In this document: positions 60,201-62,175 of the stretch, piece by piece
How positions within the stretch are numbered: position 1 is the stretch's first letter
Layout of the letters: each line of letters starts with the position of its first letter
Translations under genes and position numbers: made by a program
Notes under the pieces: generated by a model
Databases searched by the model: none
Told to the model about the DNA's origin: nothing
Seen by the model: only the letters and a program-made list of their open reading frames with translations
NCBI RefSeq assembly: GCF_032062105.1
Contig: NW_026935196.1
Location: 124,001-188,000, forward strand
Direction: 5' to 3'
Length of the DNA stretch: 64,000 nt
Source of the DNA: Saccostrea cucullata
Taxonomy: Eukaryota

Positions 60201-62175
60201 TGAACAACTAGGTCAGATTCATATAAGTCCCCTGAAAAAGAAAAAAAAAATGCAAAAGAATAAATAACAACTGAAATATTTAACAATATCCAACTATGAA
60301 ATATATAATTGTATGTTTATATCATTTCCTCTGATTTTTCATTTGTGGGTGACTTTTTCTTAGAGAGTGTTCGGAGATAACGAACAGTAATCAAGCTAAA
60401 AGCTCCATTGATACAAACTGGGAGCAGAGGAAAGACGGACCTCTAAACTATCAGGTGGGATCAGCTGCCATGGAGGATGTAACAACTTCGCTAAGACATT
60501 ATGAATCTAAGAATTTGTGAAACTAAACGTAAACAAAGAAGAAAACAATAAATTTTAGAAACTTTGACAATTTGAGTTTCTGTCATTCTGGTTTGTAACT
60601 CTCGCTATCTTATAACAGGCTATGGACTTCGTATAGGGAAAGGAATTCTCGAATTTTGCAGCATTTTTAGTATTTGTTCATAGTGTTAAAGGATATCACT
60701 TTTATTCTGAAAATGTAGTGAACATTTTCATTTAATAATTTAATTTGTAATAATTGCTTTGCAGCATCTCATTTCGAATTTTTCTACTTGATGAATCATA
60801 AAACAATTAATCCTGAATTACGGGTGATATCGGGGATGTTAGGTATGCATCAGAGTGACATGGAAAAAATTGCCGAAAAAGAAATGGTGGACACCCTATT
60901 TCAATTCAGTGCAAGCTTTACTAACCTTGACCTGTGTTTTGATGAGGTGTTACTTCTACGGGGGATAAGTGTTACCTTTGCAGGTAAATTTAGTCAGAAT
61001 GGTCTTCTTTCAGCACTAGTATTTCTTTTCTTTGTAGCATCTCATTTTGAATTTATGTTCATTGGTCATTGTCACTGCTTTAACCCCCACCTGAAAGTTG
61101 TTACGGGGTTAATCGATGCACAGCTACAAGATGTTTATAAGCTATTTGGGATTGATGAATCAGTCACTAGTCAATTCAATCAGATGGCTGCCACCTTACA
61201 AAAGATTAAACTAGATTGGGAGGAAAGTTTTTTGATGCGTAGCATCGCTGTTACTTCCTCAGGTAAGGAGAGTATATACCATGAGAAATAATGTATGCTA
61301 TTGCGGGGGCTATGTCTGCTTTGTGTTCCTTATGTTTTCCATGTTTATCATCCTACCTACTTTTCCTGCACATAGCTACATTGTTCATCGTGCCTTATTG
61401 TATGTCATTCATAATATAGGTTCAGAAATGGCTAGATATGTTTTGGAAGAATATAAACACGTCATTACATGTGTATGTCAATATCTTCTCGCATGTACTC
61501 AGGTAAATTGGAGTTGGAAATACTCAGAATATTAAATGCCTTTCATTTTATGTATCATGCTCCATGTTTGGTGTTGGTTTTTCACTATTGAAATTAGAGA
61601 CCTCAAGTGCGTTGAGTAATCATTCATTTTTAGTTGAATAGTGTTTTCTTCGACCTTGAGCCAAACCTTGATATAATCAAGTAATATATAAAATATACTT
61701 TGATAAGATTAAATAGAAACTAGACATTTTCAGAATTAGTGCTGTTGTAGATAATTAGAAAGACTATGATATAATTTTTTCTGTTTATCTAAAAAAAAAC
61801 CACCAGTAATTTAGTTGTTGTGTTTAAAAATTAATACGCCCTTGACTGTTAGATTACTATTATATTGTTGTTGTTTTTTTTTAATAATTTTTAGTAACTA
61901 GAGGGAGTTCATTTAAATTTTTTTGTTTGCCCACAGATCGTTGTCAGTTGGAGGAACCAAAAGCCGTAGAACGAATTCAGTGGAAGCTGATCAATGCTTT
62001 TAGAGTGCTAGCAAAACGTAAGAACTTCAAGCCAGAGCAAAGGTTGTGGCACATAATGGACCGCCTTACTGCTCTCAGGACTATGACAGAAATAAGCAAG
62101 GAACTGGACAAACAAAAGTGTTCATGGCCAGTCATGAAAGACCACCCTCTGGTTTTGGATATTCTGCAGAGCTGA
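51220..62175 (+). CDS. Nuclear receptor, NR1-like (C4 zinc-finger DBD plus LBD), with duplicated LBD exon
   Basis: Exons 51220-51744 (acidic N-terminus; linkage inferred from phase), 57962-58321 ([22 protein letters not shown]), 58525-58681 (GFFRRS..CAACRYARCLEVGMS), 59017-59240 (AIKTGRYTYEKRT), 59593-59821 (FVRAIPGFADLSVSDQTELIK), 60765-60983 or 61038-61262, 61937-62175 (DRCQLEEP..LTALR..HPLVLDIL). Confidence 0.9.
55110..55330 (-). mobile_element. Possible decayed RTE-clade LINE 3' end
   Basis: Frameshifted remnants resembling CL..IW.DKIS, WTPP.K, WRSVEK.GWT and ADR...LCA..E*. Confidence 0.35.
55708..56075. repeat. Tandem duplication, 2 x about 170-190 bp
   Basis: aagaatgctg...gcaatcagattaactcatatgaggaataaatcatga...ttaaaaaaagatttttttcctcctc at 55708-55897 and 55906-56075. 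Confidence 0.9.
60765..60983 (+). CDS. Nuclear receptor LBD alternative exon A (219 nt, phase 1-1)
   Basis: ttgcag|CATCTCATTTCGAA...TTTGCAG|gtaaat; encodes ASHFEFFYLMNHKTINPELRVISGMLGMHQSDMEKIAEKEMVDTLFQFSASFTNLDLCFDEVLLLRGISVTFA. Confidence 0.85.
61038..61262 (+). CDS. Nuclear receptor LBD alternative exon B (225 nt, phase 1-1)
   Basis: ttgtag|CATCTCATTTTGAA...TCCTCAG|gtaagg; encodes ASHFEFMFIGHCHCFNPHLKVVTGLIDAQLQDVYKLFGIDESVTSQFNQMAATLQKIKLDWEESFLMRSIAVTSS. Confidence 0.85.

Follow-up and report, generated by a model that had tools for sequence, protein, structure and literature searches.

Can one nuclear receptor gene of the oyster Saccostrea cucullata supply two receptors that share a DNA-binding domain (DBD) and differ in their ligand pocket? 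This question was raised by a 64,000-nucleotide stretch of contig NW_026935196.1 (positions 124,001 to 188,000; the whole stretch is called the window hereafter, and positions are those of the window), in which a sequence-only reading had noticed two adjacent, similar exons, A and B, and had proposed that they are spliced in a mutually exclusive manner into the ligand-binding domain (LBD). The best overall explanation, to which we give a probability of about 0.6, would be that a pocket exon was duplicated, that transcripts use either A or B, that their joint use is prevented sterically, and that the two products differ in the pocket. The features of the gene are collected in Table 1.

Table 1. 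Coding exons of the receptor gene and the intron separating its alternative exons (window positions).
Feature	Positions	Strand	Content	Evidence and remarks
First coding exon, long RefSeq forms	51220..51744	+	Acidic A/B region	Exact match to XP_062580268/9 residues 1-175; outside the read layout
Exon	57962..58321	+	A/B region and first zinc finger (P-box CEACK)	Junction 58321>58525 seen in reads
Exon	58525..58681	+	Second zinc finger	Sequence and junction reads
Exon	59017..59240	+	C-terminal extension, hinge, helix 1	Reads; CgNR1P11 forward primer matches 59215-59234 with 3 mismatches
Constitutive exon	59593..59821	+	H1-H3 insert, helix 3, helix 4 (IPGF..DQ..LIK)	Reads, structure model
Alternative exon A	60765..60983 (219 nt)	+	Helix 5, beta-hairpin, H6, H7, H8	Major form; reads in 21, out 36; RefSeq X2 XP_062580269.1
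Spacer intron	60984..61037 (54 nt)	+	A's donor, B's polypyrimidine tract and, by inference, B's branch point	GT..AG
Alternative exon B	61038..61262 (225 nt)	+	Same LBD segment, 2 residues longer	Minor form; reads in 16, out 10; RefSeq X1 XP_062580268.1
Last coding exon	61937..62175	+	DR motif, H9, H10/11, H12, stop	Reads, structure model

The coordinates, phases and splice sites that had been proposed for both exons were confirmed on the sequence. Both exons are stop-free and all junctions around the pair are GT..AG and of phase 1, with the upstream donor lying after 59821 and the acceptor of the last coding exon at 61937. The peptides encoded by A and B are 33% identical (BLASTP E value 2e-12), with a nucleotide identity of about 49%, and their local alignment score of 102, compared with a best score of 49 among 5000 shuffles, places the likeness beyond chance. 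Exons A and B are tandem duplicates, each encoding the LBD from helix 5 to helix 8, and adjacency, homology, common phase, similar length and canonical splice sites, by which mutually exclusive homologous pairs are recognized, were all found. A second gene copy or a haplotig as the origin of B was discarded, as each exon has one exact match in the 1.17-Gb assembly, both at this locus. Exon B also carries a His-Cys-His-Cys stretch at the end of helix 5 (61064-61078), invariant in all sampled oysters and not found in A; to assign this stretch a metal or redox role would be no more than a guess.

The gene encodes a nuclear receptor of the NR1 subfamily, with a C4 zinc-finger DBD and an LBD. Pfam zf-C4 and Hormone_recep scored above cut-off in both isoforms, and the best solved matches were NR1D, RAR, LXR and FXR. 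Searches from the window were made with single exons and with the uninterrupted segment 60767-61261, and those at full length, like the structure models and trees, with public proteins. A heme receptor of the Rev-erb/E75 type, to which the RefSeq name NR1D2-like would point, was rejected: judged by the helix 11 position that presumably holds the heme-ligating His of Rev-erb, the shared last exon has no such His, and a Ser was found just past the aligned stretch of Rev-erb-beta H11. Two RefSeq proteins map exactly onto the exons in the window, XP_062580268.1 (X1, 652 aa) being the B form and XP_062580269.1 (X2, 650 aa) the A form. Shorter forms of 478/480 aa start at another place than 51220..51744, so that there are alternative first exons, giving a long acidic N-terminal region (650/652 aa) or a short one (478/480 aa); mixed loose read ends were seen at 57966.

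In a tree of the constitutive parts, which held NR1P members only and no outgroup from beyond that group, the gene fell within a 98%-supported clade with the MgNR1G cluster, adjoining a Pinctada protein. The published CgNR1P11 primers correspond to peptide motifs in the ortholog from M. gigas. Together, the primer matches and the placement with MgNR1G identify the gene, on sequence grounds, as the ortholog of the oyster orphan nuclear receptor NR1P11, a member of the NR1P group. CgNR1P11 (EKC35897) was described as an orphan NR1 receptor expressed mainly late in development (Vogeler et al., PMC4070562, PMC5041327). It is thus the same gene as the window locus, and the other NR1P members checked have a single pocket exon. 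The CgNR1P11 primer sites span 59215-62070, and the published amplicon is 751 bp long, compared with about 619 nt (A) or about 625 nt (B) when the M. gigas isoforms now annotated are taken; in the region spanned by the primers, EKC35897, a model of 2012, is probably different from these isoforms. A 6-nt doublet from A and B amplicons would escape notice on a gel.

About 38 kb downstream, on the minus strand and tail to tail with NR1P11, lies a paralog with a single pocket exon (G000:C17333:223600-231500; L017, L022) that appears to be NR1P10, and at least five further NR1P-like genes are clustered on another contig (C10494). Elsewhere in the window we observed two tandem, apparently intronless Cys-loop ligand-gated ion channel genes on the plus strand (34409-35643 and 39334-40647), the first of them split over two frames near 34750 by a frameshift or an assembly error. 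The minus strand holds a GFA / CENP-V-like open frame (48298-48579), a multi-exon amino-acid permease / SLC12-like gene (16600-22320; Pfam AA_permease) and exons resembling, by eye and with no Pfam match, an LMBR1-type membrane protein (1800-7700). Related fragments at 37000-37250, 44650-45100, 48900-49990 and 56250-57400 resemble, again by eye, reverse-transcriptase retroelement remnants, and a run of N occupies 43985-44129.

To follow exon usage, raw reads of three poly(A) runs, together with contigs of one run from another study, were aligned to 57950-62449. At about 3% of exon positions the reads do not match the window, so that their source must be a close relative or a population that has diverged; the reads carry no tissue or stage labels, and mates were not deduplicated. 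All four single-inclusion junctions were present, with totals of 57 reads for A and 26 for B. Entry into A was supported by 7, 8 and 6 reads per run and entry into B by 4, 12 and 0; the junctions to the last exon were crossed by 8, 15 and 13 reads from A and by 3, 5 and 2 from B. Two substitutions beside the donor made the exit junction of B appear shifted; the net skip of this junction, 674 nt, is that of the B-to-last intron. Neither an A>B junction nor a skip of both exons was found in the four runs among junctions with at least three reads per run, a threshold below which up to two A>B reads per run could go unlisted. Double inclusion from A to B thus amounted to 0 of 36, with an upper bound below about 8% of A-donor use. 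In the contigs from the independent study A and B formed a bubble, with depths of 30.5 and 14.7, respectively. The share of B was about 30% overall and ranged from 10 to 42% per run (P 0.03; small counts).

Transcripts therefore carry A or B, in a ratio of about 70:30 in the three read runs, and the junction counts bear out the mutually exclusive splicing that had been predicted from the sequence. Moreover, this exon distinguishes X1 from X2 in the RefSeq pairs of S. cucullata, S. echinata and M. gigas, and full-length B-form transcripts are present among Magallana-type Logan proteins.

Both exons were also recovered from the RefSeq X1/X2 pair and the genome of S. echinata, and from a third oyster lineage (L032), which distances suggest is probably Ostrea. 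For Magallana they are documented by RefSeq entries (X1/X2 for M. gigas and X2 for M. angulata), by Logan contigs and by full-length proteins of each form. With a pocket-exon HMM, the loci of Pinctada and Pecten and each of nine paralogs from S. cucullata gave one copy, so that the duplication is oyster-specific among the genomes checked, and a family-wide or bivalve-wide duplication was rejected. Double HMM matches among 214 proteins were also dismissed as further exon pairs, being genomic read-through ORFs or fused gene models, and a scan of JGI metagenomes for exon B returned one match, which was spurious. Between lineages, dN/dS was 0.09–0.23 for A and 0.015–0.046 for B (dS 0.7–2.2, near saturation in the deeper pairs), showing at the level of coding sequence that both exons have been under purifying selection in three oyster lineages. 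The expectation that other bivalves would have both exons with dN/dS below 1 thus held within oysters (0.015–0.23) but did not extend to the pearl oyster and scallop, which have one exon.

The two copies have evolved differently. When Saccostrea is compared with Magallana, identity is 92% for the upstream exon, 67% for A, 96% for B and 90% for the last exon, and the contrast between A and B is significant (Fisher P ~2e-5). Identity to outgroup exons is 39–53% for A and 29–39% for B. In an exon tree the A copies group across oysters, as do the B copies, with stems of 0.93 for B and 0.45 for A. We infer from these comparisons that the duplication would have followed the split between oysters and pearl oysters, and that B may be the derived copy, which changed fast after duplication and then came under strong constraint, with A nearer to the ancestral exon and relaxed or diversifying. 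One locus (L038/P0015) grouped with B in the exon tree and was rejected as a relative of B; as it carries just one pocket exon and its last exon reaches no more than 29% identity, its position was read as long-branch attraction. Among Magallana-type loci, L043/L044 and L036/L037 differ in exon A at six residues (10 nt) and are identical in the DNA of exon B; intermediate A forms among the Logan proteins suggest alleles of one species or close sister species.

AlphaFold models of the LBD were confident for both isoforms (pLDDT 93 for A and 90 for B) and matched the folds of LXR, RAR and PPAR. Both isoforms fold as an NR1 LBD in these models, as would be expected if either exon alone completes a normal domain, and the proposed extent of the exons agreed with the exchanged segment, which covers model residues 106-177, that is, the second half of H4/5, the beta-hairpin, H6, H7 and H8. 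Common to both isoforms are the DBD, H1-H4 and H9-H12, the H3 charge-clamp position and H12 being in shared exons. When A and B were aligned over five oyster sequences, 18 positions were invariant in both exons, mostly in the core, and at 39 of the 74 aligned positions no A copy had a residue in common with a B copy; these 39 are spread over the whole exon, including H7 and H8. At gap-free H5 positions aligned to what we take to be ligand contacts of RAR and FXR, all A copies differ from all B copies (F/M, M/G and (S,T)/C), and neither exon keeps the basic residue used by many NR1 receptors at an H5 contact position. Residue changes of B in H7 depend on where its two-residue insertion is placed. 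The H5 and H8 glutamates are present in both exons; B lacks a His that is conserved almost without exception among 40 family members, and its predicted H6 is longer.

With the DBD, H1-H4 and H9-H12 in common, the isoforms would reach the same DNA elements with the same coactivator surface, and would differ in the walls of the ligand pocket formed by H5, the beta-turn, H6 and H7. As half of the pocket wall differs, a difference in ligand preference is the simplest reading, and we consider it slightly better than an even bet that the isoforms differ, most likely, in the small lipophilic ligand that activates them. B would then offer a fixed pocket for a specific partner and A a more tolerant one, and the A:B ratio would tune the response of a single set of target genes. 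A more ambitious version, in which splicing toggles between two true ligand specificities in a tissue- or stage-regulated manner, the frozen pocket of B serving an endogenous oyster ligand and the tolerant pocket of A dietary or environmental lipids, is tentative and rather unlikely to hold in full. No ligand for any NR1P receptor is reported in the NR1P papers (PMC4070562, PMC5041327), and ligand gating is possibly absent from these receptors.

The exchanged exon also holds H7 and H8, which provide surface and dimer contacts, a point against an explanation through ligands. The isoforms could differ in ligand dependence or in protein partners instead of ligand identity, B (or A) being constitutive, repressive or dominant-negative, or altering RXR or homodimer pairing through H7-H8. 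The extent of the unshared positions, which reaches into these two helices, as well as the lost His and the longer predicted H6 of B, would fit such a difference, and the near-total conservation of B, surface positions included, would fit constraint by protein contacts. On the other hand, the main dimer helices H9-H11, the charge-clamp position and H12 all lie in shared exons, both exons retain the H5 and H8 glutamates, and B folds at a pLDDT of 90. Taken together, we regard a change of partner or dependence as doubtful, though it is the strongest competitor of a difference in ligand.

How the joint use of A and B is avoided is a separate matter. A spliced A+B transcript would be in frame, so that decay cannot remove double inclusion. 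The sequence-only reading had made the same point for the spacer, a stop-free multiple of three; this is true here, at 54 nt, but is not conserved, as M. gigas-type loci have a spacer of 58 nt and the third lineage one of 50 nt, and stop-free read-through is therefore incidental. What has been kept is the length: 54 nt in S. cucullata and in S. echinata, 57–58 nt in Magallana and 50 nt in the third lineage (L032), that is, 50–58 nt across eight oyster loci, compared with 232–962 nt for the upstream intron. Candidate branch adenosines in the spacer lie 24–38 nt from the donor of A, and any branch point within the spacer would be less than about 45 nt from it. In vertebrates, the steric limit has been placed at a donor-to-branch distance of about 50 nt (PMC5740500, PMC7969005). 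A spacer of 50–58 nt would put the branch point of B within about 40 nt of the donor of A, too close for both to be used in one splicing event. The conserved spacer length thus makes it likely that exclusion is steric, through proximity of donor and branch point.

Exclusion could instead be imposed by splicing factors or RNA pairing, the spacer being short merely as a leftover of the duplication. No single branch-point motif is conserved across the oyster spacers, which would suit this view. Introns of 45–60 nt are spliced in many invertebrates, which counts in the same direction. However, the spacer has been held at 50–58 nt where synonymous sites are near saturation (dS 0.7–2.2) and flanking introns change several-fold in length, and no conserved docking or selector sequence was found in the introns upstream or downstream of the pair, although this is a weak test because these introns are unalignable. 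We therefore consider control by factors or RNA pairing unlikely. For the steric mechanism a precedent exists in exons 4a/4b of OGDH, made mutually exclusive by proximity of donor and branch point, a class comprising 9% of human mutually exclusive exon clusters (PMC7969005, PMC5740500). As in the oyster pair, the OGDH exons are tandem, homologous and of the same phase, with exchange of a ligand-relevant segment; a donor-to-branch distance below 50 nt would be common to both as well, for any branch point inside the oyster spacer. In OGDH, distant branch points were mapped inside a longer intron; in oysters the whole intron is 50–58 nt long and would hold the branch point.

That B (or A) is a decayed duplicate, a pseudo-exon, splicing noise or a gene-prediction artefact can hardly be credited: one run had no read entering B, and B is the copy with the lower identity to outgroup exons, but splicing of B was seen in each of three raw-read runs and in the contigs from a separate study, and B occurs in full-length proteins of Magallana type and has, like A, a low dN/dS.

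The sequence-only reading knew of no such arrangement in nuclear receptor LBDs. A precedent is found, however, in the decapod ecdysone receptor (EcR), in which a 150-nt LBD exon is replaced by a segment of equal length, as in the exon 7 swap of E. sinensis and the 49-aa substitution of M. nipponense, a variant termed skipping plus intron retention (PMC5636884). In both systems one gene exchanges an internal LBD segment of equal length with the DBD unchanged; EcR differs in belonging to NR1H, in phylum and origin, in the size of the exchanged piece (50 codons compared with 73–75) and in having a known ligand. The isoform-specific EcR primers translate to the H1-H3 loop and helix 3, which would place the decapod piece upstream of the oyster segment. 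The oyster pair is thus an independently evolved case of LBD exon swapping, a process already known from decapod EcR.

Both oyster isoforms were also already in RefSeq, where the X1/X2 entries (XP_062580268.1/XP_062580269.1; XP_061178248/9; XP_011431631/2) are the same two proteins, X1 being B and X2 being A. These entries are automated annotations under misleading names (NR1D2-like, VDR-A) and are silent on exclusivity, conservation and function. The NR1P papers (PMC4070562, PMC5041327) do not mention splicing of NR1P11. A literature search returned nothing relevant on NR1P11 splicing, on tandem exon duplication in nuclear receptors or on minimal intron size in oysters, nor any demonstration that swapping duplicated exons of the pocket alters the identity of the ligand; as it covered few subscription journals, this absence is weak evidence. 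The pair is apparently present in databases and undescribed in the literature.

New ligand pockets in nuclear receptors usually arise by duplication of the whole gene; in this case the duplication was limited to the exon that encodes half of the pocket. A derived copy that is frozen, beside an ancestral-like copy that drifts, makes this a clear case of divergence after duplication at the level of an exon. The two isoforms form a natural pair of chimeras, with the same DBD, H1-H4 and H9-H12 and with H5-H8 segments of low identity, which allows one to ask directly what share of ligand selectivity is set by H5-H8, and provides a built-in control for de-orphaning an NR1P receptor. For the oysters themselves, two different proteins are lumped together wherever NR1P11 is counted as a single transcript in work on expression or ecotoxicology.
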